From positions 5,838,698 through 5,902,697 of the forward strand of contig OZ037765.1 of NCBI GenBank assembly GCA_964035545.1: a stretch of DNA of 64,000 nucleotides, written 5' to 3'. Below, piece by piece: positions 235 through 64,000 of this stretch. The translations under genes and the position numbers were made by a program. Origin of the DNA: Bugula neritina. Its lineage: Eukaryota; Animalia; Bryozoa. The notes beneath the pieces were generated by a model that was not told the DNA's origin, did not search any database, and saw nothing but the letters and a program-made list of their open reading frames with translations. The first letter of the stretch is position 1; every line of letters starts with the position of its first letter.

Positions 235-376
235 CGCTATGTAGACTATACACACATTAAAGCTCATTGAAGACTATATACACATTAGAGCTCATTGTAG
301 AATATATAAACATTAGAGCTTATTGTAGACTATATACATATTAGAGCTCATATTGTAAACTATATACACATTATAG
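235..376. repeat. 28-bp minisatellite, about 5 copies (TGTAGACTATATACACATTAGAGCTCAT-like)
   Basis: The GTAGAC/GAAGAC/GTAGAA motif recurs at 241, 269, 297, 325 and 355. Confidence 0.85.
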
Positions 377-763
377 TCTGTGCTGAAATGAAATTAAAAT
401 AGAAGCAGTCCCCAAGGGCAGTTTTTGGATGTGGGAAAACTAAATGTGTTTGAATTCACCCTAAATGCTTTTTTTCGAAGAAAAAAATTATCAAGTGCAA
501 AAATAGTATGTGGTGTAGTCAATTATGTTTGATGAGAAAGTTTGCCAATGGATTACAACATTTCCAATATCAAGTTAACGTAACATTGTATAGGACATCT
601 CAGTCGGCCATGTTGGGTTTAGAATGTTGTTGTAACATCTATTGTACAATTAGCTAAGTCATTCCTATCAGTTACTTCTATAGGTATCCTAATACTGGCA
701 GTACTGATTTTCTAATCCCAGTTGGTGTTGCGTTATAGTGTGGGTGAATTTGTTTTGTTTTAG

Positions 764-39502: not shown

Positions 39503-42500
39503 ATGGATTGGAGAATCGTTAGTTCATGTGTATATTTGCTTATAAGTATAGGTAAGCTCAATACATGTAATATATTGCTTGCATCTTGTAAACTTTTTAC
39601 TTCTCTATTTGGTATGGTATCATGTTTTGTCAGAACTATGTTTTTTTAGCTTAATCTGTCACCTTAGCAACAATAATTATAAACTTTTTACAGCATTTAA
39701 ATTGTAACATTTGTTAAATGCACTCTATTCTCTTTACAATGTCAGTATTTACTCTCTGTACACGTGTCTTGTATATGTGATCTATTAGGGATTGTAAGAT
39801 GCCAAGTGCTAGATGTTGGAGTGTATCTAAACATGGCCGGTGTGAGTGGTTATATAGACTTTACTGCAGCTGGCCCAAGCGTCACTCAAGCCGCCCTCAA
39901 CCTCACGGGAACTAGTGGCTGGACAGGATGGGAAATTAGGGAATATCCTGTCACCACTACAGACTCTCGTGGCTGTAGTGATTCTGTTCTTGGGAAACGG
40001 TAGGGACTTCTATCTTTACCAAATTTCCTGTATATTTATCTTTACCAAATTCCCTTTTATTGTTATCTTTACCAAAATCTTTCTACTTCTAACTTTTTCA
40101 ATTTCCTCTTATTGTTACTTTTATCAATCTTCCTCGATTTCTACATTTACCAATTGCTAATTCTTGTGCTTTTTTAACTCCTTCTACTTTCACATTGAAA
40201 CCCTATTTTCTACTTATGCCTTCAATATTTTCTTCATCCGAGAAAAAGCATCCAACACCATTATCATAACTTCTGCACCCAACCAACCAAACTGCACATC
40301 TGGAAAGATTCGATCAGTCATTGCAAAGTCAAATTCTAATGAAATATAACTTAATCAAAGTCTAATGAAATCACATGCTAACACACTAAGGTAGAGAGGC
40401 TAAAGCTGTAGCTTCATGGTATAATCCATCGACTAGACCTGCTCGTGCAGCTGAACGTTATTTTTATTGTTTTATTGTAATAATATTACAGAAATGATTA
40501 TTTGCTTAGTGTGCCATTGTATTTAATATCTGTGCCACTGTTTCAAAATTTAAAGGATTTTAAGTAATCAATCATGTGTGAAGCTGACAGGGTGACTTCA
40601 ACTCGTTCTGTTGTAAAATTACAGACTTTTGATTGATTGCACTTTAAAACTCAGAAGTGGAAGTCTGTCTTAAATAAATTATAACACCCCAAACAGTAAC
40701 ATTAGAATACATTTAGTTACTCATAAATGAGGAGCATTGACTTTTCTAATGTGATGCAATTGCTGCATATACCAAAAATACCTCAATTTAAAAGTACAAT
40801 ATATTTTATATCCCAAATATGAAGCGAGTTTAAATAAATTCGTCATTAAAATTGCTTCAACCTGAGTTATGAGCATCTACATATACTTTATAAGTATCAA
40901 TATTTTCACTGCCACCAAATCTATGCGATGTATTATTTGTTTTCTTATACTCTATAAACAATAGCTATTGTTCCAATAGGAATTTTATATTTATATATAG
41001 GCTGCTGCATTTTGGAGTTATAAGATTGTCTAATATAAATGAGCAATAATACAAAGTATTTGTTTCTAGGATACATGATCTTTCAACGTATCTGGAAATA
41101 AAAGATGCTACTCCAGGGCAAGAAGTGACAATGCAGGGTGTTTCTCTGGTCATCGGAAATAATGCCATTCTTGGTAAGCTTTAGGTTGTAACTTTCTATC
41201 AAAGTGGTGCACACCGAATTCCTTTTCAAACAGATTGAACAGCAAAATGGTGATCCAAAAGCACAAAACTATTGAATTAGTCTTTTTTTTATTTACTTTT
41301 CAATTAAATTTGTAGCACAGAAAGTTAGAGTAGGTGTAGAGCTGTAGAAAATCGATGGCTAAAGATATTTGTATTATGAGAATAATTGTGAAATAAAGCA
41401 ATCACATTTAACACTTCAAATGCTTGCTGAAAAGTTAAAATAGAAATCAAAGCTAATCCAAAATTATCTCTGCACTTGAAAGAGAAAGCTCTTCCAAGTC
41501 TTGGGATTGCCAGATGGCAAGCAAATGCCAATTCTGTAAAGTGAAGATGTAAACCACAAATATGTCACATTAACTAGTCACATTAACTAGTTACATTAAC
41601 TAGTCACATTAACTAGTCACATTAACCAGTCACATTAACTAGTCACATTAACTAGTCACATTAACTAGAGCTATAGTTGATTTAATGGGTTTGACAACAG
41701 TATTTATTCACCAAAAGATATAAATAGCGAGAATGGCCCAGTTTCTCTTCCATAATTTATTCTTAGTATAACCCAATAATCCCACGTACGCAGTATGAAA
41801 GTTGAACTAGGGAAAGGACAGATGAATGCAAGCTCATAAGTTTTACTTAAGCTATTACTAAACTCTGCAATCGAGGTTTTTTTGTTAGAAGCTTTTTCCT
41901 GAGTATATTCATCTAGTTGCACAAGTCAACTGTTAATCACTGGTGCTTAATTCCTAATCAATTATATGGAATTACAGTGGTAATGTTTCCTCTATAGACC
42001 ATGTGTAAGAGTTTAGTCTATCTCAAGTTATCTGCAGTACTGTACATCGAATGTTTTGTGTTGACTTGCATAGGAAGATCTCTACTGCTTACTAAGGGAG
42101 ATGTGAGAGCATGTGCTACTATAATACAGCGCCAGGAGCATATTTCCTATGCCGTGGTAAAAGGCCATATTAGTGGTGATGTGCATGTACGGCAAGTTAA
42201 CACCAACTTATTTGCTGTGCTCACCGATTTGTTCAGTACAAAATCACTCACACAAAGCCAAACCATGTAAGTATATCTGTATAATCACTATTAAAGTGCA
42301 CTAATATCTTATTTCTTATATTCTAAGCATAATTTTAGTGTTAAACAAAGCTTGTTACCTAATTATTTGCATAAAATTGTAACAGTTTGAAGATCTACAA
42401 CGGCAGCATAGAGGTAGACAAGGCGGCAGCACAGGCCCAGGTGGTAGATGTTGGCAGCAGATGTGACCAGGTGTCTAAAAGGTCAACTCTGATCGCTCAG

Positions 42501-45500
42501 TTCCACAATGTTCCAGTGTCTGGTGGGGGTGGTTCCATCAGAAATATGCTCAATGTTATTGTTGAACCTGGGGAGTTTGACTTCTCCTGTAAGTCTTTAC
42601 AATAATAAGTAAAAATAGCTCTACAAAAGATACAGTTTGTTACAACAAGTTAATTGAGACACACCTAACAGTTGACATGTATAATAACTAGCTAGTTTTT
42701 GTTCATTAAAGCGTGCTCACAAGATCACAGTGAAGACTCCTAAAAACTGTTGATTAAATGTTTTCCTTTCCTTTGCTTAAAATCAAACTGACATTTATTG
42801 GAAGTGCAGAATCTTTGTTAACTGTTTTCAATATGCATACAACAAAAATCTCTTTTCCTGTAGTATATGTATATGATAATCATTAACAAGTATAAAATAT
42901 TTGTTGGAACTTTCACAATTGGTTTTTTAGAGAAAATTGCATTATATTCATTTAAGAACATTTAATAACCAAAAACACTCAATACTTGCATCATTATTTT
43001 ATACGCATGCTATTCTGCAGCTGGCTCTATACTGTTTGGAGACGACTCCCAAACTTCCTGCGCTAACTTCCATCTCTATGAGCCTAAGACAGTACAGGCT
43101 GTGTTCAGTAGAGATGGTGTTGATGGTAGTATAACATTCAAGCAAGATAATCCTTTCAAACCTACCACAGTTGGTGTTAAGCTACAGGTGAACAAAAACA
43201 TATATTTACCAAATGAAGCATGGGTTTTCTTATCTTCTTGCATTTATATTTTATCTGGTATCATCCTTCCTGAAAGGTTTCTGTAACTCAACTTTCCAAA
43301 AACTTTTATCTGTAGAATTTACAGAACATGGCTGGTGGCTACCATGTACACAAGTTTCCACTACCGTACCAGTTCACTACTGAGACAGATCTTTGTGGAT
43401 CTGGTGTTACCAGCGGACACTTCAATCCTTTAGGGGCTACTACTGGCAGTACACAAGACGAGTTTGAGGTAGGATTTATTTCTGTGATCCAGCAGGTTGC
43501 ATTCTTACCTCTAGCAACTTTGATTGTTCTACATACATATATTAATTGCTATAATATTTATTCTTAGTTACAGAAATAAATTCAAACAATTTGGTGTAAA
43601 AGCAGTTTAGATTATAAGCTAAGTCTAAAAGAATGAGGCCATCCTACTCTCCCTCCTTTACTTTATTCTTGAATGAAAGGAAATCTGCCCACACCTTGTT
43701 ATTGGGAAGCTGTTTCTAAGAGTTGTAGAAGATTATCTTTGGATTATGGTTTAGAATTTCAAATGAAATGAAAACCAACCTTAATTCAGATGAGCTTATG
43801 ACTCGTTGCCACTGTTTCTACGGTGATTGATATAATAAAGCATTTGTCTTTTGCTATCTCTTGTTTTTATCTAAAAATGGAAAACATAGAGAGGCAGTAA
43901 AACACTACTCATTTAGCTTGTTTTCTAACAATAGCTTAACAATAAGAGTTTACATTAGAGTTAGTTTTATGACAGAATGGGAGATTATAGGAGGAGGGGG
44001 GGAGGGCTGAGCTGTGATGTTATCCAATATTTCATTATAGGCCATGTTCAATGTGTCAACAGCTACTTCCCTGGTAATCTAATTGTACTTCCCCTGCAAT
44101 AGATTGAGTATCCACAGCTGTAACTTTTTGAACTGTTGAAACTTTGCTTAAGTATTCAACGACTTTGTCAGGAGGTTTTATTCAATACCTCCAGCAAATG
44201 CATTCATTAATTTATATACAGTGCATTAATATTATATAATTTCGGCAAAAGTGGTGGGGTTTACAATGCTCTATTATAAGCATGATAAATCTTTATTTAT
44301 CCACACCCAACAACATCAAATTTAATATTGCATTACGAAATGAGTTTAACATAAACTGTACTAATAATATAAATATCCCATAATATAGTGTTTCATTTCT
44401 TAGAAAAAAAGAAAATTTATTTTTGCTCATGATGGATGAAAAAGAGGAAGACATTACTCAAATATTACACATTAAAATTTTTCTAGAACTTTGAACTGTG
44501 AGGTAAAAAAAGTTTACAGGGCAGTAGAAGTTATGCAATATATTACATGATTTCCAATGTTTCACAAATAAAGTAGACTCAAACTTACAGTTGGTGCACT
44601 TCATGTAAAATTCAAGTTGAGGAAGTTGCTATATATATACCTCCGTAACTATGAATAGACACAAAATATTAAATATTCTATTGCACAATATTTCTTGGTT
44701 GTAAAATCAAATTTATATAAAGATATGTGCACACAAGTTTTACATACATGTTTTATTTAGATTGGAGATTTGAGTGGGAAACATGGCTTCTTAACTGGAC
44801 TAACCAACATCAATAAGGTCTACACAGATTCATATCTGCCTCTGTTTGGTGAACACAGCGTTGTGGGACGCTCCATTGTAATACATTCACCAGGAGGGGC
44901 CAGATGGATGTGTGCCAACATTGGATATTCTGGACCAGTTACTGTTGCTAAAGCAGAGTTTAATGGAGATGTTCTAGGTTTGACTAATTTCTATTTATAG
45001 AATGGCAGTAATAACATTCCCTGTAACAGACAGGAAGTGTTCTATTATTTACTTTATCATGGTAACAGTAAACCCACTTAATGTAATAGCTATACTACAT
45101 TTTATTTATTTTTAGCTAATGAGCTCTTTTGGTAACTTCCACAACGCCTAAAACAATAGCAGAAATTTTCTGTAATTAGCTGGTATAATGTTCATGAAAG
45201 ATTTGATGTATTTCTGTTTTTGCTAGACTTCAGTATTGCTAAATAATTGGAAGTTACGCTGTAGCGTGTTTACTGCATTATTTATATATGCGCAAGCTCT
45301 GTGAGAAACAGGTGGAAAAGATTTTAAGGGCTATAAACTTCTTTGCCTCTCTTTATTCTAGTAACACAGTTTAAGGACTTAATAGTAGCTCAGGAGTTGA
45401 GCAACAACCTAGCGTAAAGTGTCATGATAGACAAGTGTCTGCCCATTGAATCAGGGTCTCTCCTTTACGTATAGGCATGCCTCCTATATCAATTACATCA

Positions 45501-48500
45501 GTGCAAGTGTAAAGCTGTAGCCTCATTCAGATCAGTTGCAATATAGTCATCTAGTTCGAATTTCTGATTTGGTTTCCTTATGACTATTACTTGATATTTC
45601 CTGTTAGCTGTGTTGAAATTATATATGCTAGAATGTTGTGAATGGCACAAAATATCTCCTTTATGTATCTGAGAGGATTTTCTTCTCAATATTCCATTAT
45701 GACTGTTACTTTGGGCATGTGTATCAAATGTCTGTGGAAGATGTATTCGGTTATAGAGTTAATGCTGTGATATATACTGAAGACCATTGATTTGAATCTT
45801 CTAAAACACAAACGTTAGTGTTTGTGTAGTGTTGAAAAGCTGTTCTAGGTATTTGAAAAATATTATCTATCTACACATAGTTAACTTGTTGAATGTTAGA
45901 CAATCATAGTATTTATCTACAGGCACCATAACATTTGTCCAAGAGGAGAATAAGCCATGGGCTGACACTGCACTGTTCATTGAGATGTCAGATGCAGGGG
46001 AGACAATTGAAGAAACTTTAAATCACAATTATCACATTCATATGAGCCCTGTTGGTGATGACTATCTGGCTAACACTGGCAGGTGTGCCTCTACTGGTGG
46101 TCACTGGAATCCATTTGATGCTCCCATTTCAGGTTTGACTTGTGTTTGCCATGTCCCATATGCATTACTTTTATCATTAATATTACTAGAGAAAGAAAAG
46201 TCATTTTAATTAAATATTCGTTGACTATTAATATAGTTCCTTCTTACCTGTCAAAAGGTTATTTTTGTTGTTTTAATGTTTTTGCAATATTTTATTTCTA
46301 GTCATAAAGTCTTGTCCTGTTCCTGTGCCTTTCCAATCCTCAATTTATATTTTTATATATAACAGAACTTTAAAATGGCAGCACTTCAAAATCTTGTAGA
46401 TTCCGCTGTATACAAGCCAACCTGTGCTGCCAATAGACTGGGCTGTGAAGTAGGAGATCTCAGCAACAAGTATAATGAGACAATAAACATAGCAGCAGGT
46501 CAAACTTCTGCCAAGTACTTCTATACGGATAATATTCCTCTGTCTGGTGCCTACTCTGTTATAAAGAGATCTGTTACCATCCACCAACAGCAGAAAGCTG
46601 CAGCCAGATATGTCTGTGCGGACATTGTCAAGAAGGTGAGTTGTATAGTGATTAATATGCAATAATAATAACCTTGCTCTTATCTTTCAAACAATGGATA
46701 ATTCCAAGAGTTATGTTGTTTCATGATGTTCATGAGGTTAATAGTATATTGTGAAGACGTATCATCCCCTCTATCTGTCCGGCCCACCACTTCTCTACTC
46801 CCACTCAAGTTAGCTAAAACTTCATAAAACCTGGATATGCATGCTGGACTCTCATATCATAGTAAACACTCCTTGATGTCTAACAGCTTGCAGTAACCTG
46901 TTCTTTTTACACCAACTTTCCATGTTGGTCTATTTGAAGGCTTTTGACTTCATGTCATATATGACTCATCATTATGTGTCATACTTTCCAATTTATGTCC
47001 TGTATTACTCTCTGTGAAATGTTTTACCAGTGGTTTAAGCAAAGCATTAGGCAAATAATCTCCTTGGTTATGTGGGAAGCTGTAATTGAAAGCAATGAAT
47101 ATACAATCTGCCTGGTTACACACCAGCAAACCAGTGTGCAGTCGTTAGCTAACAACAACCCGTATTTGTGATTACATGGTTGCTTAGATACCTTGTTATT
47201 ACATGACAGTATACACTTTCCAGAAATTAAAGTACCACAGTTGGTTTTTTAGCTTTATGTTATATAATATGCAGAAACAAAAACTTTAGCTTTTAGCTCT
47301 AACATTTTATTGTTGAACTGTTGCTGCTACTGGCAAGGTTCTAGACTGTATTGAAAAGCACAGCTCTCAGAAAATAACAAGCACTGTTTTTAGAATATAG
47401 TAATAGTAGTAAATGGATATATTATGTGTTTATAAAATATGTTGTGAGCATGGGGTTGCACTGGTGCAACCAATGCTAGAGGGAAAAAAACCATCAGCAA
47501 ATAGATATGAGAAGTTGTCTTCTAGTATTAACATGTGAAATGATCTACTTGGCAGCTGATACCTGTTATAAGGACGGAGGATGAGTGGCAGATGCTGTCT
47601 ACTCCAATGGTGACAGGAGATATCGTGATGGCCTCTTCTGGCCTGCCTTCTGCTGTCACAGACGTAAACGTGTCTCTCAGTGGTTTGAACAGAGTTGCAG
47701 GTGGCTACCATGTACACCAGTACCCTTTAAACACCAGGAACCCTGGTGATAACATTTGTGGCACTACAGGCGGACACTACAATCCCTTAGGTGTGTATAG
47801 CTTGTGGTTTTTTATGATTTCTACATTGCTGTTTAGTTAATGTAAAGCTTGCATTTTGAAAAAAAGAAACAGGTATTTTCTAAATGTGAAATAGTTTATA
47901 TGTCAATAATTGTCTATTCCAATTCATATTCTCATATAGATGTTTATAATTCAAGAAGGATAACTCCTAAACTTCAACAATAAAAGTTGTTCAAAAAAAT
48001 TTTTGTTTCTCCATTAGTTGTGATAGTTAACCGTATGCAAGTATATTCCCACACTATGTGTATATGTCGCGTGCTGGTAATATATACCATATGCTAATAT
48101 CACCTGCTAGGAGCATCAAACTGGGAAGCAAATGACACTCTTGACATGTACGAGATTGGAGACCTCTCAAGTAAATTCAAGTACTTAACAGATTTGACTG
48201 ATTACACGGCTCAGGTATGGCGCATGCCATCTTGGATATTAACATTATTAATTTAGTATAGTCACTTACTGGTGGTAAATCTATCATACATCATGGATAT
48301 TCCATTTCCTTGTCTCAAAATATAAAAATGTTTCCTTAAAGTCGTGTTGAGGTCAACTGCTTTTTCAAATATTTGACATGTTGTGATTAAAGTTGTGTCT
48401 TGACTAAATGTACACAGCAAATCTAAAACGGCTGATTCTATCAACTAAATAAGTTATTCAACTGCCTGCTTCATTTTTAAACATTCAAAGCTAAACTTTA

Positions 48501-51500
48501 ATTCGTTGAGAAACTCTAAAGTTTATGAGATTCACTTTTAAAGAAATGATGAAGTATGCATACAGTTAAAGGTTAAGTGTCAAATAATTGCATTAGTTTA
48601 TACAAGTATAAATAATGGTGCTCATTTTCCAGCTCTCGGACACAAATCTACCTCTGAGTGGTGCATACTCAGTAGCTGGTAGGAGCGTTGTCATACACGA
48701 CTCGTCTTCTGCCAGGTGGAAATGTACAAACTTAGTCTGGGATACTCAGGCCATGAATGGAACTTTGCTTCAAGCAAGAGCTGAATTCTTTGGAGAAATC
48801 GAGGGTCATATAACATTTGTGAGTACAAGTACAATACACACCAACTGTACGTAAATGTTGATATAACATATTAAGTGTCGAGTCTCAAAATCATCTCCGA
48901 TGTTTGTCACATAAACAAGTTAGGAGATTTGGTAGAGTAACAGCGATGGCTGAATGCCTAATAAAGGAATCTTTCAATTCTTTTACACAGATAAAACAAT
49001 TATACTGCTATTAATTTGTTATGTATGAAATAAGAGTTTAGTTCATTTTACCTTAATGAGATCCTGACTTCATTGCTCCTCTGTTAGCCACAAGTATGTT
49101 TGCTGCCAGTGGCCTCCTGGCTGAGCAATAACCTTTGGCTAAAGAGCAATTTGCAATTTTGAATACCTACTGCACATTATTTTAAAATGTATACAGTACA
49201 GCTAGCAACTTAGAATCTAACCCCATGACTAATTTGTAACCAAAAACTCATTGAAATAAAAATATGCTGTCGCTGCTGTTATCTAGTCCCAGGTGGTGAC
49301 CCCTGAAGGAGAGAGTGATGTCAGCATAGAGGTGATGCTGTGGTACAGAGATGAGATTGCTGCCGCCACATCAAACCACAACTGGCACGTCCACGTGTCT
49401 AGCGTGGATGGTGATGATTGCGCCACTGCTAATGGACACTACAATCCTTTCAATGCTCCAGTCAGCTCTGCGGTAAGCCTATTCAGTGCAGGACTACTTT
49501 TTGAGTGACTTGTACGTTATGTGTTCTTTATTGTGCATGCTGTGTAGTACACAATTTTGGGTATGTAAAATATTTGACCACACTGGGAATCGAACCACAG
49601 ATCTCTGGCTTGCAAGCTAACATGTTTACCATTAGACCATAGGAGCTACTGGGAAATCTCAATTCTACAGAGCTCCATATATAAACTTAGTTAGTGGGTT
49701 TCATTAAAGTCGTACTTGTATTTGCTATTACTTGTGTGTAGGAGTACAGTACAGAGTGCAACTCTCAGACACCCAGGAAATGTGAATATGGTGACATGTC
49801 AGGGAAGCTGAGTAAACTGGCTATCGGTACGGCAGCTGCTCCAACTCGTTACGTCTTCAATGATAACTTCCTGTCTCTCAACGGAAAGTTTGCTGGTAAT
49901 ACTTTTCAATCTTTTTTATTTATTAATTAGTAGACAAAGTATTTGTATTTGAAAGCTGGCACTTGGTGGAATCTCTTACATTATTTTTGTAACCTTCATT
50001 AATGGTCTTTGCAATCTGTTGATCTTTTAAAAACTTCAAATTTGCTCCAATTCACAACATCAAAAATTATAAAATGTAAATTATATAATATAAAATAATA
50101 TGTGCTATGAGAACATTATATGATGTAATATATGTAATATGAGAACATTATATGATGTAATATGTGTAATATGAGAACACTATATGATATGATATTGATG
50201 AGCAAAATATTTACTAGATGCATTATGGGAATATAAAAAATTATATTTCATGGAGGCATTCATTTTTAAGATACACATATTTTTTAAATATCTATGCCCT
50301 TTGGCTATTTAACTTATTTATTTTACGGTGTACATAACTCTAGATAAGTCTGAAACCCTTATATTGCCTACAAAAGTGCATAGAAGCGTCACAAGACTTT
50401 TGAGTTGAAATAATAAATAATATTTTAATGTTGTAGGCTGATTTCTATATTCCACAAATAATAATTGTAATTTTTCCATGAGATGTGTATTTAGTAATGC
50501 ATTGTGATTTAACAAGGTTGCAGGCCATCATAACATTTTCTGGCCATTTTAAACAATATTTAAAATGTCTGCATGCTGCATCTTCGTAGTGATTGGCCGG
50601 TCAGTTGTTATTCATGCTGCTGACTCTGGTGCTGCCCGTGTGGCATGTGCTGACATAGCGCCGTTTGGTGGAGCTACGCAGGTTGTTGAGTATCACATAA
50701 TGGAGCCAAGTGGAATCTTCAAGTAAGTTGTCTTATCTTGTTCAAAATGTGTTTTATAATTATTATAATATTATTATAATTATATTGGAATATAAGATTG
50801 TAGGTGGAAACTAATATATAGTCTGGTAAATCTTTTGCATATATGTATTATAGACATCATTGTATACATATCAGCTTCCCAATGTGATGGCATTTAAGTT
50901 GATTATTAATTTTCTGTAAAGTTTTCGGTTAATTAATCGAACCTTAAAATTGAGAAATTGTTTACTAATAAAATATGTCAATGATATTGTGTTATTTACT
51001 GAAAATATCCAACCAATAAACTGAATAATATTATGTCTTCTAATTGCATCTGTTTTCATCTTATTACAGAGATGCCATGGCTGCTGCCATCACAGAAAGT
51101 GTAGAGGCTGATGACACGCAGGTGGTGTATGTTGTTGAAGGATCCACGAGAAATAATTGCACAGCCGTGGAGATATACTTCACAGGTACTTCTGTAGCAA
51201 ATCATCAGTCTTTGCAGTAAATATTCTTGCATTATCCACTTACTGTTAAGATAAAAAGTAATTATTTGCTGTTGAATTATGTTTTTCAGGAGATCAAGCG
51301 AGAGAGTTGAAGCAAAGATTCGACCCGGCTACTTTGCCATTGGCTTATCGCAATGTTGACGTCTGCAATGCTGGTAAGTCTGCATCTTCTAACTGGCAGC
51401 TCAACAACTTCAACTTTATTTTCTCCCTTATATCCGTACTGCCTAATACTTATGGACCACCAAAATAACTATATTCATTGCCAGTAAAATATGCTGCTAT

Positions 51501-54500
51501 AGGGCAGCACTAGAATAGAATTAAGACCATCTGATTAGGTCTAGCTTTTTCTTCTATTAATATCATATTAGCAAAGTAAATCATGACTCAATTGAACCAT
51601 TTTTTTTCAAATGTCAACTTGTAGATTCATAAACAAATTTAACTTTGTTTACTTTTTGATGTCTATAGACTGGGCTGAGTTTTAATAGAAATGTTTCACT
51701 TAGTCTTTCTAACTGTTCATTTTGCTAGGCGGAAAAGCGCAGTATGAAATTCGAGCATTTTTCAATATGGCGGGTGTAAAAGGAGATATCGAGTTTCGAG
51801 AAACAAGTATCGACAGAACTCGAGCTATCATCAGTATTGCGACAAACGAGTCATATCAGTGGGAAATTAGAGAATTTCCTGTTCTTACGACAGATGCCAA
51901 ATCCTGTGATGAAGCCTCTTTGGGCCGTGTGTAAGTAGCCTTGTGGGAAAGTTATTAGTAAAATTAAGATCTATGGCTGTTTAAGATTATTAAACAGTGC
52001 TGTTTCTGTCGGTATTAACTAGCTGAATTTTTCAGAAAAAGTGAATGTCAATTTATTTTAACTATATTACTGTTTCATCAATAAATTTGAACATATAAAA
52101 TATTGTATTAAACTTCATTCTTTCTTTTTAGTTTATATTTGACTTTATAGACAAAAGTTATCATACGCAATATAAGCATTTCCTTAAAATATAATAAATT
52201 TTAAATTATTGTAGTTATCACATAGTCTGAGTTTTGTTCAAAGTCATAAAATGTAGGCAAATACAGTTTTAACTTCTGAAAGTATCTAATGTCAATCAGA
52301 AAATGTTGTTGTTTCAACAGTGTGAAGGATTTGACTGAGTTCCTAGATGTGGTAGACAGCAATACTCGAATGGGCTCTAGTGTGGAACTGAAAGATGTCT
52401 CCATGACTGAAGGAGCAGATGCTATTCTTGGTGTGTAATTTTTCTATTATTGTTTATTGACTGCTGCCTTAACTCTCACCTTAATGCAGCTGATACTTCT
52501 CATGTCCGACAAAACAGCATATCAACCTAAGGATTGTCTGCTCCTGAACTCATTTTGGTGAAGGCATAGATTTCATGATTCATAGAATATGTTTTTACAA
52601 GGGCATCTACAAATTTAGTTTCTTTGTATTTCTTAGCTTGAAAAGCAATTTGTGCACAGTTCAATGATACATTCTAACCTTTTACAATTTTTAAGCTAAA
52701 GTGAAAAGATGAGTACCTTACACTGGTGAATTATAGTACACAGAGTAGTAGAGCTGTAAGCAACTGCGTATTTTATAGGAAGGTCATTACTGCTCAAAAG
52801 TGGTAATAGAAGAGCCTGTGCAACCATCCAGGGACCTGAGTCTCTCTTGTTCTCAACAGTCAAGGGACCTGTGGCTGGCCAGGTTCATGTACGCCAAGTC
52901 GGGTCTCGTTACGCCGTATTTACGGAGCTATTTAGCACCACTTCTCTTCAGCCAAGTTCTTCACCGTAAGTTTAGTAGAAAAAATTGTGAAACTTTTTCC
53001 CCACTGAGATTCGAACTTGAAACCTCCGGCTTGCATTCAGGCGCACTAACAATTACACCACGGGGGCCACTGGGTGAACTCAACAATACAAAAATAAGCA
53101 TTGTATCTGCAAGCTGTAACTTGTTCATAGCTTTCTTGTATGAAACTTGATTATATACAATTGCTGAGAGAAAAATATTTTCTGTTATTATTTTCTGTCC
53201 TAAGTTCTATTAAAGCTGCAATAAAATATCTAAGCTTTGTTTGCTGTCTAGGCTGAAAGTTTACAGAGGAGAAGTGAATGCTGACTCACCTGCTGCTCAA
53301 ATGAGTACCTTTTCTCTAAGTCAGAGATGTTCTTCTGCAGCGACCATGATGGGGGAGGTCAAGGACGTTCCAATAGCTGCTGGTGGCTCCAGCAGCAAAT
53401 ACTTCAATTATATTACTCCAACCACGAGAAGTTTTGACTTTGCAAGTGAGCATACAAAGCGACATTCTATAATCCACATCAATACATTCTTTAATTTAAC
53501 TCAATTTTAGCTTTAGAGCTTACATTTTATGTAATGATAAATCAGCCTCTCCAGAATTTAGACAGAGTATAGTATAAATTTTGGTAGACATACCATGTGT
53601 TTTGTGTAACAACATAGTATATATGCTTCACGATAATTTATATGTTTAGGTAGCTGGTTGAAAATAGGAGACAACTCTCAAACTTCGTGCGCTAACTTCC
53701 ATCTCTACGAGCCTAAGACAGTGCAGGCTGTGTTCAGTAGAGATAGTGTTGATGGTAGTGTAACATTCAAGCAAGATAATCCTTTCAAACCTACCACAGT
53801 CAGTGTTGAGCTGCAGGTAAATGGAAACAAATATTAATGAAATGGAATATGGGTTTTCTTATCTTCTTGCATTTATATTTTATCTGGTAGACATCTTTAT
53901 TCCTGGAAGGTTTCTGTCACTCAACTTTCAAAAACTTTTATCTGTAGAATTTACAGAACATGGCTGGTGGTTATCATGTACATGAATTCCCTCTACCGTA
54001 CCAGTTCACTACTGAGACAGATCTTTGTGGATCTGGTGTTACCAGAGGACACTTCAATCCTTTAGGGGCTACTACTGGCAGTACACAAGATGAGTTTGAG
54101 GTAGGATTTATGTGTAAAGTGACGGCTCAAACTAAATATTCTTATGTGAAGCTGTTTGACTAAATTGAACTGCAAGTCTCTTATAATCATATTATGTCAG
54201 GAAAGATAGGTTGTAATGAAATATTTATATTCTCATTAGAAATAGATCAGCGCAGTTACATGATTAAATAGATCAAGCAACTAAGTACCCTTAGCTCAAA
54301 CTGGATGTATAATTGCAGGCTTTTTGAAGAGTTGTATTTCTGCGTTAAAGCAGTTATGTTTTAAATATAAATATCAAAACAAATTGACAGTTTATATGTT
54401 AATTTACAGTGTTAAATTAATAATATATATGTTTTTATTTAGTTTTATATTAATTTTGAGTACTTTTTCAGGTTTGCTGTATTAATTTCCATTATAAGCG

Positions 54501-57500
54501 TTTGTTATTCAGAATTATAATAGCATTCCATTATTATTTTAGCAGAAATAAGTTCAGTTTGCTTAGTGAATTGTGTTGATCTACATTAGCTTGAGTACAA
54601 TTATTCTGTGCTTACTGTTATGCTAACACTTTAGTCTGGATGTTGAGGTTGTCATTCATGCATGGCCTGCACTACCTTAGCTGGTAACAACGTTATGAAA
54701 AAACTGCAAGTTACATTTATGATGCAGTTTATGTTTTTAAAAAAGCTACTTTTTGTTGCGTTGCTTTACTTGGCTATGTACATGTGACTCATACAGCTGT
54801 ATTTTCTGAAACTCTGTAACCACACATGTTGGCCTTTTGTTATTATTCCAAAAAATCGAACCATGACTTTCATTTGTGATTGTGGGTGCATCTCTTACAC
54901 CTCCTACTTTAGATTGGAGATTTGAGTGGAAAACACGGCTTCTTAACTGGACTAACCAGCATCAATGAGGTCTACACGGACTTGTATCTGCCTCTGTTTG
55001 GTGAACACAGCATTGTGGGGCGCTCCATTGTAATACATTCACCAGGAGGGAATAGATGGATGTGTGCCAACATTGGATATCCTGGACCAGTTACTGTTGC
55101 TAAAGCAGAGTTTAATGGAGATGTTGAAGGTAAAATTCTACTGCAATATTATAGTCTTTAACACAGAGTTATGCTCTCTCTTTATGCTCAAAATTAGGCT
55201 GAAATTGAGCTCTCTGACCACGGTAAGGTAGTTAGGCTGTCTGTCATTATGCAAGGCTCATAACTCCTATAGTTGCTTAAGCTCTTTGACTTAAATTCAC
55301 AGCTTTGTAAATATACTCGGGTTGAAAAAATATTTTTTTATTTCCAAAGTGTGGGTCGTGGTACTCTGTTCTGTGCTGAAGGGGGGGGAGCAAACTTCAA
55401 AGCAGCTGCTGCACATAAAATAAGTTATTGTTACTACCTGCGTGTTACCTCACACATAGTTAACCTGTTAAATGTTAGACAATTCTATTCTCTACCTACA
55501 GGCACCATAACATTTGTCCAAGAAGAGAACAAGCCATGGGCTGACACTGCACTATTCATTGAGATGTCAGATGCAGGGGAGACAATTGAGGAAACTTTAA
55601 ATCACAATTATCACATTCATACAAACCCTGTTGGTGATGACTATCTGACCGACTCTGGCAGGTGTGCCTCCACTGGTGGTCACTGGAATCCATTTGATGC
55701 TCCCATAAACAGTAAGTGTTTGTCGTTGTTCATATTCTTTAAAACTGGGGACAATAATTTACTGACAATATGAAACTCTAAAGCTTTGTACCAGCTGCTC
55801 TATTCGTTTACAATACTAACCATATAAATTACCAAACAGCGTGCCCAGAGTCTAAGTCGCACTAGTGAGCATTCATTGCTGCTACTAGTTAGCCATTGGT
55901 TTATTGTGTGCTACGTCACAGCTACCTGAATATAATATTATACTGATTTATTTAGTAGTTCAGCATTCAAATTGTTGGATGTGCGTCTGTGGCTAAGCTT
56001 GTCTACATGCCTTTACTATCTACTACTCAGTATTATTATTTACTCAAAGAAATTATATGACATATGGTACACAATAAACTAGCAACTAGCAACAAAAGTA
56101 GCAATTAACGCTTTTTTTCAGCTGTAGTGGGAGCAGGGTATTAAAAGCTCTCCAGTGGTTCATACCTGGCAGCATTTTTAAATCTTGTAGATTCCGCTGT
56201 ATACAAGCCAACCTGTGCTGCCAATAGACTGGGCTGTGAAGTAGGAGATCTCAGCAACAAATATAATGAGACAATAAACATAGCAGCAGGTCTAACTTCT
56301 GCCAAGTACTTCTATACAGATAATATTCCTCTGTCTGGTGCCTACTCTGTTATAAAGAGATCTGTTACCATCCACCAACAGCAGAAAGCTGCAGCCAGAT
56401 ATGTCTGTGCGGACATTGTCAAGAAGGTGAGCTGTATAGTGATTAACATTTTCATCTATTATATTATATACACATATTTACTGCTTACTAATATTGTTGT
56501 TAACTCTGTTCTTTTAGCTGACACCAGTGATAACAACAGAGAACAGGTGGCACGGAGCTGAAAGTTCTGACACTACAACTGGTAAAGTTATGATGTCATC
56601 AACTGGACTCAACTCTGCTCCAACTTCTCTTTCAGTAAATCTGTTTAAATTGGACCAATTAGCTGGAGGATACCATATTCACATCTTGCCTCTGAACTCC
56701 ATATCTTCTGAGAGTAACATCTGTAGCACAACCAGCGGTCACTACAACCCACTGGGTATGAAGTTTATACCAATTTTTTTTTAGAGAAAAGGGCATTAGT
56801 TGAACAGAAATTGTTAGATATTTTGCAAAAATTTAATTAAAAGTCTTCAAGATTCATTTCATATTTTTAGCATAAATATTTAAATAACTGATTTTGTTTT
56901 TTCTAAAAGTTTTGTTTTTTTATGTTGTTCAGTTTTTCATTCTATGAAAAGTTGAAGCTACACATTTTATTCTAATTCCATCAGGAATATGGCAGTCTCT
57001 GTATCCTCAATTTCTTCATTATTCCAGGTGCAGCTATACTGGACACAGGAGATTCCCTGGATCATTACGAGATAGGAGACTTGTCTAACAAGTTTGGTGC
57101 ACTGAATAAGCTAGACAGTTATAGCAAAGAGGTGTGTAGTATTACTATTGGTAACTTTTCTTATGTCTAAACAAGACTGCTTCTACTATTTTAATTTGCT
57201 TGTATTTCTGCTTATGTTTGGTTAATTGATAAATATCTCATTCTGTTTTGTAATTTGTTGGTTCTATGTCTGCTATATTACTTTTAGTTACAATAATTTT
57301 TCCTATGCTTAATCATTTGTGCTTGATGATAAATATATACATCTCACAATGTACTGAGTATATGTTTAGCCTATTAAATACATTCAAATGTAGTTCAGTT
57401 CTTCTATATGACTGCTGTATTATATTCCAATGTATAATATCTGTAGGCTATGGATACTAATCTACCTCTGAGTGGTGCATACTCAGTAGCTGGTAGGAGC

Positions 57501-60500
57501 GTTGTCATACACGAATCGTCATCTGCCAGGTGGAAATGTACAAACTTAGTCTGGGATACTCAGGCTATGAATGGAACTCTGCTTCAGGCAAGGGCAGAGT
57601 TCAATGGTGATATTCAAGGTCATATTATGTTGGTAAGTTATTGACATATTTTAAGATGAATTTTTCAACTAGAGACATTCTTTTGATTTGCTGTATAGAA
57701 AATCTTTGGTAAATTTATAGAAGCAGTTGAACATTTCATGCTTTTAAATTTTCTAGAACTTTGCTGTAGAGGCGCGCCCACACTGAGTCATTTTTCTGAA
57801 AATTATGCACGTCTTGGGCCATCTTTTGACGCTGATCATTGTTAGAAAACAGGCGTAGCAAAAAATGCATTTTTTTAAAAACTTGCTGGTAATATGATTT
57901 ACTGAAGTTTTTTATTTCCGTTAAATGCACGAACTTTTTCCAGAAAGAAACGCCTCATCATTTTCTGGATATGTTATATTCTGTTTATTTTTGCGACAGT
58001 CAACACTCTTTTTCCCCAAGGCATGCAGACTAGCCTTGAATATAATAGTGTGTATTCTCAAAGTACACAACCAACAAACCAATGACCTCTATGTAATCTA
58101 CAGTATATGGTTTTGTTAGTCACAAGTCGTAACATCAGAGGGAGAAAGTGATGTCACTGTAGAAGTTATGCTGTGGAATGAGATTGGCCGAGCTACGTCC
58201 AATCACAATTGGCACGTACATGTCACGCCGGTGGTGCAACAGGATTGTCAGACGACTGGTCCACATTACAACCCTTTTCTAAAGGATACTAGTGCCCCGG
58301 TAAATAGAGTATTAGTAGTTGGCTTAGTTATGCAATATCCACATGTTCCTGTAACTCTGTAAAATTAGTTTGCGGTTGTGTGGTTAAAAACTTTATGTTT
58401 TTACAATTATTGAAATACAGTTGGTTATCTGAAGTTGTCTACCCTCATTTTACTTTATTCTAAAACCGGTACAACTTCATTATTTTGTAGCTGTTGTCTA
58501 TAAATTGAAAAATGGCATTGAGCATGACTAGCCTGCTTAGGATAGCCATTTTATTAGTATGCAGTTTATTTCACTAGACATATAACAGATTTGTATGTTT
58601 GGTCATGCGGTTTTTACCTGTTCCAAGTTTATTAACTATAATTATAATTATTTAAATTTTATTTTTCAATGTACAATTGCATTATTTATGCTATAATTAT
58701 GTTGTTTACATGTTAACAGAGTTACAAGTCTGATTGTGGCCCACAAACGCCGAGGAAATGTGAAGTGGGAGACATGTCTGGCAAATTTCAGCCAGTAAAC
58801 ATCGGCAGTAAAAGCTCTCCCACCAGATATCTTTTTAACGACAACTTCTTATCACTAACTGGGAAATTCTCAGGTGATCAAGTTAAAAATAAAAACAATT
58901 TCAAAAACTGTGACTGGGCTTCAAGTTTAAAACACTTGGTAAATACATAACGACTCTGCTTCAAATTTTATGTTTCTTTTACACAGTAATGGGCAGGTCC
59001 ATAGTGATCCATGCTGCTAACCGGGGCAGTTCAAGGGTGGCCTGTGCAGACCTCGTACCGTTTGGCGTATCAGCTCATGTGATCCAGTTCTATGTTAAAA
59101 CAGCTGATGGTACTACTGGGTAAGTTCTATATCAAACCGTGCCCTCTTTCTGGAGGTAGATACTTAATAGCCTACCTATTTTTAACTTTAGTATCTTTTT
59201 AAATATTTTGCCTTTGTAATAGGCCTGTCTTTGGACCAATAACTAAATGCAGGTAAACCTGTGATTAATTTTTATTTCCGTAACTATAACTTATATAGAA
59301 AAACTTGAATAAATTTGTACATTATCACTGGTACCACTTTATGGCTCAGAACTTGTGTGTTGACTAGTTGCTGACCTTTGGTTTACACTGCGAGTTTCCG
59401 TATCAACTTTTAGTCGGTAAACTGAAATACAATTTCTGTAGCTAATCAAATCTTTAGCAGCTATAATAGCATGATAGCATGTAGTTCTAAATTGATGAGT
59501 TAATATAAATAACTTTTTCAGTTTACAGACTCCATTTGCTAAAAGGTATATACAACTTTTATGTAATATAATCATGCAACATTCAGAATATTGTGGGAAA
59601 GACAACTCATAGTTGTGCCTAAATTACATGAGCGTTTACTTTTAGCTGTGTTGTGTATTTGTATAGACAAATGATAGCCGACGCTATTGAGAGTCAAATT
59701 AATATTGATGCCTACAATCATGTGTATGTAAAGTTGGGAGCTGAAAGGGGCATCTGTACTGCTGTCAGCGTGCACTTTGCAGGTCAGTGTGAGTCAGCGA
59801 TTACATGCTGTCAGTTTCTTCTCACTCATAACAATCTACATATTCTGAGCATAGCAAGACTAGAGGTGCTTTTAGATTAAATGAAACTCCTGAGTCAAAT
59901 GGACGAATAATTCTTGTACTTTCAGCTATTGGAAACCATTATTTAGACACTAAATAACATAATTTTAAGTTAATTTTGAAATATTAATTTTCTCAATGCA
60001 TTTCTCTATTTCAAACACAAAAAGGAACTTGTAAAGTAGCTGCTGCTGATGAAATTTCTGCATTATAATTAAAATGAACCATTGATAACTTCAGTCAGTA
60101 ACAGTCTTTGGATAGAAAGCTGTACAAGAGATAGGTTTAATGAACGTAGGTCAGCTTAAATGTGATTATTTATAAGCCTGATCTCTGATTAACAAGCTGT
60201 TATGTGTAGAAATTCTAAAGTGTCTTAGATCAAGAATGTGTTGTGTTCACACACAATATAAGAATGACATTAAACACTCACTGTGTTATGGTAAACTAAT
60301 AGTGAAAAAAGCAGTAGTGTAAAACTTTTATTTCTTGCATATTTTACTTTTAAAAGCTTTTTATTTACAAAATTATGTCTTATTCAAACTGCGGTTGTAT
60401 AGAATATTTAGTATTTACTTTTAAACATACATAGTACTAGCTTACCTGTACTTTGCTTTCCTGAAAATAAACATTGTTTTTTGCATACAGGTGTTAAGAC

Positions 60501-62075
60501 ATTAGTGTTATTCATTTAAATAGTTGCTTTGGCAATCTTTTATTATAGATTTATTATAAGCTAATGTACTACTATGATTTCCTAATCATACTGATTGTAG
60601 AGAATGCAAAATGCCTCTGCTTGGTTTTTATTTTACACTATGATATGTAAAGCAATTTTCCCCTAGTTTTCTGCACTTAAAGCTATTATCCCAAACCTTA
60701 TATTCAGGTGAGAAAGCCAAAGAATATCAACAAAAGTTTAGTACCAAAAGTCTGCAACCACCTTACAGGTCTATACACACAGACACTTGCAACAAAGGTT
60801 AGTTAGATGGACTCTCATTCTTTCAAGTTTCTAGACAAGCTTAGAGAATATTTAACATATCCTTGGTATACACAATAAGTAGTCTATAATAATATGCTAT
60901 TGTGCCTACATGAATTTTGGGCTTTGACTTGAGGTATTGTGTTGAAACTCTCTGCTTACATGTACCTTAGATATTTTTAAAATATGTTTTAATTAAAATA
61001 ATTATATGATGTTCGGATAAAGTTGACATAAATTTCAATTTTACTACTACATGCATGAAATCAAAGCATATTTTGCCTCTCTGCAGGCAGTTAAAAATTT
61101 ATTTTTTGGTAGTTGTGCTCTCACTTTTACATATAGCATACAACTCCAAATTTTCTCTGGTAAAGAGTGTAACTTCAAAAGCGGCTTATTTTTCCGTGCT
61201 TCTAAATTTTTCCAAGTCTTACAATAGCACATCCACATTAAATTAATAAAAAGCAGTATATTTTGATGCGTACCTCTGTTAGCTTTTGTTGACTGTAAAC
61301 CAACAACACTGACTTCTAACACTTATTTGACTAAGCCTCCTTTAATTTTATGTAATTACTTTGTTGCTTTCAAAAATTGCAATCAATAAATTTTTGTCTT
61401 ACAATACTTTATAAACTAATTGCTTTAAATAACTTATGTATACACAGTTGTTTGTGTAGCACACTTTAAATACATACATTCATGTGACTGTATATGATAT
61501 ATGATAACTCCAACATTTATTATGGGTTTATTAATACTTCTTGAAATAGCTATAATATCTCCGTTCCATCTGTAGTTTAGATCTTAGCTCCGTCTTCCAG
61601 TTTAAAATAAAACTATTTTATACTTATAAAAGCAGCTAACTGGAGGATTTGTAAATTAAAAATTAAATTCAATATATGACTCATCAATTACTCAGTTAAT
61701 ATATACAAGTGATTACGTTCAAGTCTGTATTCAGTAATCCAGGGACCTATTATATATAATCATGCATTGTGTACCTAAACTTCAAATACTTCAAATACCC
61801 TGCTCTGCTTGCGTAACATTCCTACCACATCAATTAGACTCTATTTAGGTCACCTAGTTATTTAGGAAAGTTCGCATTGTTGAAAACATTAACTTAACAT
61901 TTAATTTCTTGGCTTATATTTCAAATACATACAGTTGGATGCAACTACTGTCAAGTTGATATTTTGCAATTCTAAATTTACATTTTAATTTTGTTGTATT
62001 TTTATTTTAGCAGCTATTGGGACAGCAGTGTCTATTCTCCTGATGGTGCTATCCTTGATCAACCTTTTCTTATAA
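39503..62075 (+). CDS. Double-length copper-only SOD repeat protein (CSRP/Rsod-like); signal peptide plus GPI-type tail, 36 exons, about 1,950 aa
   Basis: Leader exon 39503-39551 (MDWRIVSSCVYLLISIG/IVRC). Unit 1 is 17 exons (39789-51373), unit 2 is 17 exons (51729-60797), and the tail exon is 62011-62075 (AAIGTAVSILLMVLSLINLFL*). Each unit has four domains with HxH..C..(G/P)H(F/W/Y)NP..ExGD(L/M)SxK..RSxxIH..RxxC and lacks the two Zn-only His, which is the Cu-only SOD signature. All junctions are GT-AG and in frame. Confidence 0.85.
41565..41668. repeat. 13-bp tandem repeat (GTCACATTAACTA), about 8 copies
   Basis: Seen directly; intronic. Confidence 0.95.
49564..49669 (-). mobile_element. tRNA-derived short interspersed element, copy 2
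   Basis: Minus strand: TGGTCTAATGG..GCTTGCAAGCCAG..GGTTCGATTCC. Aligns end to end with 25263-25367. Confidence 0.75.
50107..50190. repeat. 32-bp tandem repeat, about 2.6 copies
   Basis: ATGAGAACA recurs at 50107, 50139 and 50171. Confidence 0.8.
51729..60797 (+). other. SOD-repeat unit 2, with the same 17-exon structure and intron phases as unit 1
   Basis: Exons start at about 51729, 52321, 52779, 53252, 53650, 53948, 54913, 55502, 56191, 56518, 57029, 57447, 58120, 58720, 58987, 59667 and 60708 (ends 60797). Each corresponds one-to-one with a unit-1 exon. Confidence 0.92.
52986..53090 (-). mobile_element. tRNA-derived short interspersed element, copy 3
   Basis: Minus strand: TGGTGTAATTG..TGCAAGCCGG..AGTTCGAATCT. 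Shares flanks with copies 1 and 2. Confidence 0.7.
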
Positions 62076-62763
62076 TATAGTAGATAACTAGATCTCAAAG
62101 ATAGTAATTCAGCATATATAATCCATGTACTAAATTTAGTATTTTTTACTTTTTCAAGTTTATTATAATCTTTTTGTTTGTTTATTGTTACAAAACTTTT
62201 ACTAATCACAAATAAAGCTTTGCTTTAAAAAGTATTTTCTTGTTTTCTAATAAATGTGTATGTTTTATTTAAAGCTATCAAGAAACTTTTATATATTTGT
62301 AATATTATACTTCATGAGTACAATTATTATATTTGATTAACTTCCATTGGCTGACAGACTGTAATGGTGTCCTTAAATCTCTACAGTTATGGAGGAAAAA
62401 TGCACATTCAATCATTGTTTTTTTTTACCTTTTAATTAAGATAAGCTTGTTTCACAAATGTTACTACCAATTTGTTTCAACTTCTGTGATTGGTTAATTC
62501 AGTCTCCACCAGTGCATGCAAAAAGTGTCATTTCACATACACTAAATTTAACATTTTTCCACGGTATTTAATAATAAACCAATAAGAAGAAAGGTTAAAG
62601 GTTATTTCATAGTACATAACCAGAGTAATTTAATTAGTTGTGTTTGTAATAATTACACACTCTACTTATTTGGTATTGAAAGAGAGAATCTCTCAATAAG
62701 CAACAAAGTAGTTTTTGCACTATACTGGAGTACTGTTTATCTTATCTGCATAAAAGAGAAGCT

Positions 62764-63802: not shown

Positions 63803-64000
63803 GTAACATATTTTATTCTATGAGTTGATTAGAAAATTAAAGAGCATTTACATATTTCCTCTTTAATAAACTAAAACAGATCTGTTCATTACACATCTTC
63901 TCAAAATACAACATAAATTACAACCATATTTATTTAAATTATCGCTCACTAAGATATTGCTGCTATAATACTATATTTGCTAGGTTTGTGTGAAATGCTT

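Follow-up and report, generated by a model that had tools for sequence, protein, structure and literature searches.

A probable fusion of two tandem Cu-only superoxide dismutase repeat protein paralogues in the bryozoan Bugula neritina

We analyzed a 64,000-nucleotide stretch of the Bugula neritina genome (contig OZ037765.1; here called the window, with position 1 as its first letter) that carries two tandem units of Cu-only superoxide dismutase (SOD)-repeat protein (CSRP) sequence, followed by the start of a third, all on the plus strand. Joining the exons of units 1 and 2 from the window sequence gave a model of 36 exons and 35 introns, all of them GT-AG, in the order leader (39503-39551), unit 1 (39789-51373), unit 2 (51729-60797), and tail (62011-62075). 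The joined coding sequence is 5,907 nt (1,968 codons) long and contains no internal stops. The two units have 17 exons each, colinear exon for exon and identical in phase, and each unit consists of six SOD-like repeats (R1 to R6) followed by an ~85-amino-acid (aa) non-SOD region that we refer to as the stalk.

The 49-nt leader exon comprises an ATG and ~16 codons of a putative hydrophobic signal peptide and ends at a phase-1 donor (ATAG/GTAAGC). Repeats R1 and R2 of unit 1, which are SOD-like but lack Cu ligands, occupy 39789-42588 (exons 39789-39999, 41070-41173, 42074-42266, and 42386-42588). The four Cu-site repeats, R3 to R6, follow at 43021-50722 (exons 43021-43187, 43316-43468, 44761-44977, 45923-46132, 46400-46647, 47556-47790, 48111-48214, 48633-48818, 49287-49472, 49742-49895, and 50590-50722). 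The stalk, which contains two Cys residues, spans 51070-51373 (exons 51070-51185 and 51290-51373) and ends in ...DVCNA G at a strong phase-1 donor. In unit 2, R1 and R2 lie at 51729-53445 (exons 51729-51930, 52321-52430, 52779-52965, and 53252-53445), and the four Cu-site repeats R3 to R6 lie at 53650-59119 (exons 53650-53816, 53948-54100, 54913-55129, 55502-55711, 56191-56438, 56518-56755, 57028-57131, 57447-57632, 58120-58299, 58720-58873, and 58987-59119). The unit 2 stalk (59667-60797; exons 59667-59782 and 60708-60797) ends in ...DTCNK at a phase-1 donor (AAAG/GTTAGT). The tail exon opens at a phase-1 acceptor and encodes 21 mostly hydrophobic, GPI-signal-like residues before a TAA at 62073-62075; two AATAAA hexamers 3' of this stop (at 62211 and 62249, within 62211-62254) likely mark the 3' end of the gene. 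By hydropathy alone, the leader scored 2.65 (over 8 residues) and the tail scored 2.89 (over 12 residues, after the small residues CNKAA). The units share exons at 87 to 98% nucleotide identity. Outside conversion tracts, dS between them is saturated, yet the Cu ligands, the Cys pair, and the splice sites have all been kept in both.

Database and family searches were run exon by exon, and the joined protein was used only for frame checks and local comparisons. The Sod_Cu family (PF00080) matched exons encoding the N-terminal half and exons encoding the C-terminal half of the Cu repeats (E = 4e-6 to 0.035); as introns divide the domain, each single-exon match fell under the 28.9-bit cut-off. 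The exon profile retrieved CSRPs from many phyla that carry PF00080. R1 and R2 were homologous to R3 to R6 by hhalign (probability, 96 to 99.7%), such that each unit contains six SOD-like repeats rather than the four per protein that a preliminary description of this DNA had assumed. This count fits the family, whose members have 4 to 12 repeats and mostly six in multicellular animals (PMC13017621). Each of the R3 to R6 repeats contains HxH, GH[FWY]NP, ExGD, and (V/T)IH motifs and a Cys pair. The four Cu-ligand His residues (those of HxH, the GHxNP His, and the VIH His) were found in R3 to R6 of both units and were absent from R1 and R2. The predicted joined product of 1,968 residues would thus have 12 SOD-like repeats, 8 of them with full Cu ligand sets, and both the eight intact Cu sites and the two full 17-exon units in frame proposed earlier are borne out by the ligand sets, the open frame, the colinear exons, and the matching phases. 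When the repeats were aligned to the canonical Cu/Zn SOD of the same genome, every one of the eight Cu repeats proved to have lost the Zn site: none has an equivalent of H71, Glu stands at the position of H80, and the position of D83 is occupied by Asp (ExGD, the "E110/D113" signature). The electrostatic loop (loop VII) is likewise shortened in all eight, by ~15 to 17 residues between VIH and the last Cys relative to that Cu/Zn SOD, and both intradomain Cys columns, a putative disulfide, are retained in all eight.

A third, separate CSRP gene begins at 62764 and continues to the end of the window at 64000, with its own leader (62764-62812, phase-1 donor) and exons at 63069-63462 and 63693-63802, the first of which carries a GQNFQQ-type low-complexity insert. 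The start of this gene was absent from the preliminary description. Unit 3 runs past the window, and its own tail exon lies ~6.7 kb beyond the window's end. The leader of units 1 and 2 equals that of unit 3 in size (49 nt) and phase, and their tail exon matches the unit 3 tail exon, which occupies the homologous position and has the same "AIG" start. Since unit 3 has its own leader and tail, separate genes are the local norm. It can stand alone by virtue of a 49-nt leader, an AATAAA hexamer, and a tail exon located ~300 nt past the stalk, none of which is present at the junction between units 1 and 2.

That junction consists of a 355-nt spacer (51374-51728), which we read as an intron with a GTAAGT donor, a CTAAC branch-like motif, and an AG acceptor. 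The strong donor reported previously (CTG/GTAAGT at 51373/51374) and the acceptor that follows 355 nt later (...TTTTGCTAG/GC at 51728/51729) are both present in the sequence, and both are phase 1. Among all 53 introns in units 1 to 3, the spacer falls within the observed length range (79 to 1,292 nt), and its donor and acceptor scores rank 51st and 29th of 53, respectively. In 51374-51728 and the adjoining sequence, we enumerated all ATG-started open reading frames (ORFs) that end in a GT donor in phase 1, and likewise all AG acceptors in phase 1 that open a short ORF. This full enumeration identified no credible leader or tail exon in or around the spacer, in agreement with the earlier claim that the gap holds neither a leader for unit 2 nor a tail for unit 1. 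The earliest in-frame ATG of unit 2 is at 51767, and a protein initiated there would have no signal peptide. Reading through the 51373 donor adds 31 codons before a TAA at 51466-51468, a possible alternative end. The spacer showed no significant similarity to the first intron of unit 1, the last intron of unit 2, the intergenic DNA between units 2 and 3, or the unit 3 flanks, so that a deletion cannot be mapped; the unit 1 promoter region was not alignable with that of unit 3.

An independent view of the junction came from contig L005 of JGI metagenome 3300002729, which carries the label AY690838, the accession of the Bugula neritina mitogenome (PMC2678162). This contig was reached through a 55-aa genomic ORF, the only same-lineage match in the protein collections, and represents a sibling lineage that is ~10% diverged. 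It is colinear with window positions 50846-52401, covering exons 17 (stalk) and 18, then the spacer and exons 1 and 2 of unit 2, in the same order and with the same spacing. The junction donor and acceptor are both conserved. The spacer is 88.6% identical to that of the window and differs by frame-breaking indels of 5, 1, and 3 nt. Across the 160 flanking codons, dN was 0.016 and dS was 0.334 (dN/dS = 0.049), indicating that the junction-flanking exons of both units are under strong purifying selection. No canonical poly(A) hexamers (AATAAA or ATTAAA) are present in the window's spacer, and the sibling spacer contains two AATAAA hexamers. Given that such hexamers occur in the sibling and are expected often by chance at 33% GC, they are uninformative as a test between one gene and two.

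Taken together, these observations favor a single gene that likely arose by fusion of two tandem CSRP paralogues. The open frame, splice signals, ligand sets, and junction conservation are read directly from the DNA, and the absence of a leader or tail exon, the intron-like spacer, the conserved junction with its purifying selection, and the existence of comparable doubled proteins in fish lend it indirect support and make it the best-supported reading. The part of the original single-gene proposal that needs qualification is its product, since single-unit isoforms are also in frame. In the fusion, unit 1 would have lost its tail exon and 3' end and unit 2 its promoter and leader exon, along with the DNA between the two genes, leaving the 355 nt as a hybrid phase-1 intron. 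Transcription would start upstream of 39503 and end after 62075, with 51373 joined to 51729 by default splicing. The resulting precursor of 1,968 residues would comprise a signal peptide, six barrels, a stalk, six more barrels, a second stalk, and a GPI-type tail. By homology with the oyster CSRP, the only family member whose SOD activity has been measured (PMC12217663), we infer that the product acts at the cell surface as a Cu-only superoxide dismutase, each anchor carrying eight catalytic sites; its transcript structure and GPI anchoring are likewise predictions. The protein collections searched contained no transcript-derived protein and no long protein of the same lineage, nor were mid-length fragments recovered when the final 306 residues of the Watersipora protein served as the query. 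Among metagenome contigs, the spliced junction pattern had 0 matches, and no relatives of the first exon of unit 2 were confirmed.

Since every boundary is phase 1, single-unit isoforms are possible, and the locus could be one transcription unit that makes mainly single-unit products. The two 17-exon units would then be alternative super-cassettes sharing the leader and tail, with 39551 spliced to either 39789 or 51729 and 51373 spliced to either 51729 or 62011. All six boundaries concerned are phase 1; leader-unit 1-tail (1,005 aa) and leader-unit 2-tail (1,000 aa) are both open and of canonical CSRP size; and the tail acceptor scores higher than the 51729 acceptor (9.7 versus 6.8). However, these products would require introns of 10.6 to 12.2 kb and the skipping of 17 good exons in a locus whose longest intron is 1.3 kb, whereas the nearest-site pairings (355 nt and 237 nt) are the earliest to become available as the locus is transcribed. 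Moreover, the precedents in fish are annotated as full doubles. We therefore regard mainly single-unit output as unlikely, although minor isoforms of this type may occur. A gene in which regulated splicing of phase-1-symmetric super-cassettes yields either unit singly or the two in series is also a doubtful proposition, albeit one that, if true, would provide three surface enzymes and a means of tuning how many Cu sites, and of which type, each anchor carries.

It is similarly improbable that units 1 and 2 are two separate genes, as would be usual for tandem copies at this locus, judging from unit 3. Unit 1 would have to end by read-through or retention of its donor, adding the 31 codons up to the stop at 51466-51468, and would use a non-canonical poly(A) signal, for which AGTAAA variants are available in the spacer at 51483 and 51575. 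The read-through ORF does include a weakly hydrophobic stretch, but its maximum 12-residue hydropathy is 1.88, versus 2.89 for the true tail, and the peptide is not conserved in the sibling lineage, where a 5-nt indel directly follows the donor. Unit 2 would either depend on an unrecognized promoter or leader, and the enumeration gave no leader candidate, or be a non-functional copy. Given the purifying selection on its first exons (dN/dS, 0.05) and its intact ligands and splice sites, unit 2 is not a dead copy, and translation from its first ATG would combine a GPI-type tail with no signal peptide. A misjoin or collapsed repeat that removed the unit 1 tail and the unit 2 leader from the assembly would be a natural concern, since exons 87 to 98% identical between the units can mislead assemblers. 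Nevertheless, the junction region is unique sequence, and the matching order and spacing in the independent, ~10% diverged sibling contig make a misjoin very unlikely.

The single fused gene that we favor can be compared with the canonical six-repeat CSRPs of Crassostrea gigas (PMC13017621), Lingula anatina (LOC106177466; P0005, 977 aa), and Watersipora subatra (P0231, 1,005 aa). The single-unit Watersipora protein is the closest named relative, with 54 to 55% identity. From R1 through the stalk, each Bugula unit aligns colinearly with these proteins, with R1 and R2 lacking Cu ligands and R3 to R6 bearing them, and a predicted signal peptide and hydrophobic C-terminal tail are common to all. 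In the canonical proteins, the stalk-matching region lies directly before the C-terminal tail. In contrast, the window's protein would carry two full units in series between one leader and one tail, with the unit 1 stalk internal and followed by a second R1.

The preliminary description knew of no account of this doubled architecture, but the same layout is already present in public RefSeq "cusr" proteins of percomorph fish; our literature search found no paper on it. These proteins include those of Pungitius pungitius (P0172, 1,910 aa), Vanacampus margaritifer (P0173, 1,908 aa), Nerophis lumbriciformis (P0174, 1,942 aa), Salarias fasciatus (P0175, 1,923 aa), and Doryrhamphus excisus (P0177, 1,911 aa). 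In these proteins, two whole units separated by ~10 residues lie between a single signal peptide and a single hydrophobic tail, and each protein gave two alignments to unit 1 residues 14 to ~968. They differ in being only ~31 to 33% identical to the window's units and, by simple counts of HxH and GH[FWY]NP motifs in the three fish proteins scanned, in having two to three sites per unit rather than four. Judged from this level of identity and from the single unit of the bryozoan Watersipora, the fish and bryozoan doublings are independent in origin.

More distant relatives share individual features. The CSRP of Capsaspora owczarzaki (CAOG_08503/P0001), described as the largest known, has 12 repeats, nine of them with Cu (PMC13017621). 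The exon profile ranked it first and matched it in 12 stretches; the longer member of the cluster bears an SH3 annotation. Like the predicted fusion product, it places twelve SOD-like repeats in a single polypeptide, although it belongs to a unicellular relative of animals and its repeats do not form a 6 + 6 duplicate with an internal stalk. The lost Zn ligands, the Glu/Asp signature, the shortened electrostatic loop, and presumably the open Cu site and the extracellular or GPI-linked location are shared with fungal Cu-only SODs such as Candida albicans SOD5 (PMC13017621), each of which, however, has just one domain and a size of ~25 kDa.

Units 1 and 2 are an addition to the known CSRP family rather than a new kind of system. 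If the fusion gene is real, as it probably is on the genomic evidence, a lophotrochozoan makes a 12-repeat, 8-copper CSRP by paralogue fusion, and the fish proteins suggest an independent doubling in vertebrates as well. The repeat number of animal CSRPs would then still be evolving upward, by duplication of whole units rather than of single domains. The locus would also illustrate, in compact form, how genes can fuse through introns that match in phase 1, and doubled CSRPs may serve as natural material for addressing whether tandem SOD barrels matter for stability, for avidity, or for how far the protein reaches from the membrane.

Repeated Cu-SOD motifs occupy stop-free segments of the + strand from 39.5 to 62.1 kb of this AT-rich animal DNA (GC ~33%; C1:5838698-5902697 of a 216-Mb assembly), and a protein-level self-comparison of the window revealed two colinear units. 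Splice sites were fixed by GT-AG ends, phase match, and agreement between units 1 and 2; one exon too diverged for direct pairing was located via unit 3, a separate gene downstream. The resulting + strand model comprises a leader exon (39503-39551), the 17 exons of unit 1 (39789-51373), the 17 exons of unit 2 (51729-60797), and a tail exon (62011-62075). As the preliminary description had proposed, one leader, two 17-exon units, and one tail join in frame, giving 36 exons and 5,907 nt that are open over 1,968 codons with no internal stops. The junction donor (...GCTG/GTAAGT at 51373/51374) and acceptor (...TTTTGCTAG/GC at 51728/51729) likewise have the splice letters and the shared phase 1 claimed for them. 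Database searches were made per exon, with exons joined only for frame checks and local comparisons, and signal peptides and glycosylphosphatidylinositol (GPI) signals were assigned from hydropathy and position alone.

Units 1 and 2 fit the canonical description of animal Cu-only SOD repeat proteins (CSRPs), which contain six SOD-like barrels with no Cu site in the first one or two, in a family whose repeat number ranges from 4 to 12 (2026 review, PMC13017621); the four domains per protein assumed earlier are thus outdated. R1 and R2 of our units lack the Cu histidines yet are homologous to R3 to R6 (hhalign probability, 96 to 99.7%). When R3 to R6 of both units were aligned against the canonical Cu/Zn SOD encoded in the same genome, none of the four Cu ligands had been lost and the disulfide cysteines were kept, whereas the two Zn histidines were gone (Glu at the second position, with Asp kept, ExGD) and the electrostatic loop was ~15 to 17 residues shorter. 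Pfam Sod_Cu matches the half-domain exons singly, each slightly below the cut-off, because introns divide the domain. R6 is followed by a non-SOD stalk of ~85 residues with two cysteines, whose equivalent in other CSRPs lies immediately before the C-terminal tail. Given six repeats per unit, four of them with full Cu ligand sets, the joined product would carry 12 repeats, 8 with complete Cu sites; as far as ligands are concerned, the eight intact sites anticipated for it hold.

The first exon of unit 2 matched a single 55-residue open reading frame in the protein collection, from a JGI metagenome contig (L005) whose label, AY690838, is the accession of the Bugula neritina mitochondrial genome (PMC2678162). 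This 1,632-nt contig aligns to window positions 50846-52401 at ~88% identity and has, in the same order, the two stalk exons (17 and 18), the spacer, and the first two exons of unit 2. The junction donor and acceptor are conserved, and the spacer, with indels of 5, 1, and 3 nt, is 88.6% identical, much as the neighboring introns are. The four exons contain zero indels over 160 codons (dN = 0.016, dS = 0.334, dN/dS = 0.049). Given this colinearity, together with the conserved splice sites, indel-free exons, and low dN/dS, the misjoin considered in the preliminary description is very unlikely. The comparison shows an arrangement older than the split of the two lineages, with protein-coding sequence under selection on both flanks of the junction.

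Searching the whole assembly with a profile of the C-half exons uncovered a third tandem unit just downstream of unit 2, as well as a fourth copy located on a different contig. Unit 3 (62764-64000, continuing to ~6.7 kb past the window end; positions 1-8688 of the stretch L001) begins with its own 49-nt leader (62764-62812), equal in size and phase to that of unit 1. Its second exon holds a GQNFQQ-type repeat, it shares the 17-exon body, and its own GPI-type tail exon lies ~300 nt past the stalk, together with poly(A) hexamers; the product is 1,068 residues long. At this locus, a unit thus normally forms a gene by itself, and unit 3 displays what the unit 1-2 junction is missing.

Indeed, an ORF and splice-site search of the 355-nt spacer (51374-51728) yielded neither a hydrophobic ORF that starts with ATG and runs to a phase-1 donor nor a phase-1 tail exon, bearing out the earlier view of this gap. 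Read from its first in-frame ATG (51767), unit 2 would have a GPI-type tail and no signal peptide. Scored with position weight matrices built on the remaining 52 introns of units 1 to 3, the spacer ranks 51/53 for its donor and 29/53 for its acceptor, and its length falls inside the observed intron range of 79 to 1,292 nt. Read-through past the 51373 donor adds 31 codons in the window, but the peptide differs in the sibling lineage (L005) because of the 5-nt indel, so this end is not conserved. We consider it highly probable that units 1 and 2 use one common promoter, leader, and tail, and reasonably likely that the full 12-repeat fusion is the main product. Single-unit isoforms of 1,005 and 1,000 residues from the same gene would also be in frame, since every boundary involved has phase 1 (the donors of the leader and of both unit ends, and the acceptors at both unit starts and at the tail); however, they require introns of 10 to 12 kb, whereas introns of this gene reach 1.3 kb at most, and we rate them as minor. 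For the fusion itself, a deletion presumably took out the unit 1 tail and the unit 2 leader; its boundaries could not be placed by comparing noncoding DNA between units, because this DNA is no longer alignable. No transcript-derived sequence of this lineage was found in protein collections, and scans of metagenome contigs for the spliced junction and for relatives of the unit 2 first exon were both blank.

Units 1, 2, and 3 are 62 to 65% identical to one another and 54 to 55% identical to their closest named homologue, the CSRP of the bryozoan Watersipora subatra, which has a single unit. Between units, dS has reached saturation except in exons 6 to 10 and 13 (43021-46647 and 48633-48818 versus 53650-56438 and 57447-57632, plus the matching unit 3 exons), where nucleotide identity is 87 to 98% and dS is 0.2 for units 1 and 2; the other exons are 53 to 68% identical. 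One high-identity tract, 43038-43479, extends through an intron. High identity of these exons amid otherwise saturated divergence indicates gene conversion among the tandem units.

Unit 3 carries a Gln/Asn/Gly-rich low-complexity insert of ~60 residues right behind its signal peptide (21/42-nt tandem repeat, 63151-63254), and the HxH motif of its fifth repeat is gone (YHIN), which leaves unit 3 with only three Cu sites that look intact. The fourth, single-unit paralogue (G000 C2:81421-88022, minus strand, L003/L004), on another chromosome-scale contig, appears poorer in introns, with open frames 255 and 341 amino acids (aa) long. Upstream of the cluster, two + strand open frames (29251-29541 and 30163-30462) with weak, sub-threshold EB module matches (PF01683, E ~3e-4 to 6e-4) may belong to an unrelated Cys-rich repeat gene. 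GC rises directly after the unit 3 3' end, and L001 8900-9700 (minus strand, ~9 to 10 kb past the unit 2 tail) looks coding-like by eye on the opposite strand and would be a convergent neighbor gene.

The CSRP family, its chemistry, and its range of 4 to 12 repeats are already published; a Capsaspora CSRP with 12 repeats has been called the largest, animals being said to have mostly six (PMC13017621), and Bugula is among the genera listed with CSRP homologues (Tan et al., PMC12217663). The searchable literature yielded no description of a doubled 6+6 protein in which one stalk is internal, but the same layout is present in public fish annotations. Matches to P0004, a long unannotated double-unit protein used as a query, included RefSeq "cusr" proteins of several percomorph fishes (1,908 to 1,942 residues). 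By local BLASTP, each of these consists of a single signal peptide, two whole units separated by ~10 residues, and one hydrophobic tail, which provides a precedent for reading units 1 and 2 as one gene. Doubled percomorph CSRPs of ~1,750 to 1,940 aa occur in Pungitius, Vanacampus, Nerophis, Salarias, Doryrhamphus, and Periophthalmus (P0172 to P0177 and P0180), whereas eel, sardine, salmon, and sea bass CSRPs are ~980 aa long; our literature search found no paper on this lineage-specific doubling. Further multi-unit CSRPs are P0002, P0153, P0003, and P0004 (unannotated, from 4- to 7-kb contigs of Logan assemblies), uninterrupted ORFs of 1,283 to 1,463 aa that contain two consecutive R3-R6 blocks and gave 8 to 10 profile matches. 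Units 1 and 2 of B. neritina probably represent an independent whole-unit fusion in a lophotrochozoan.
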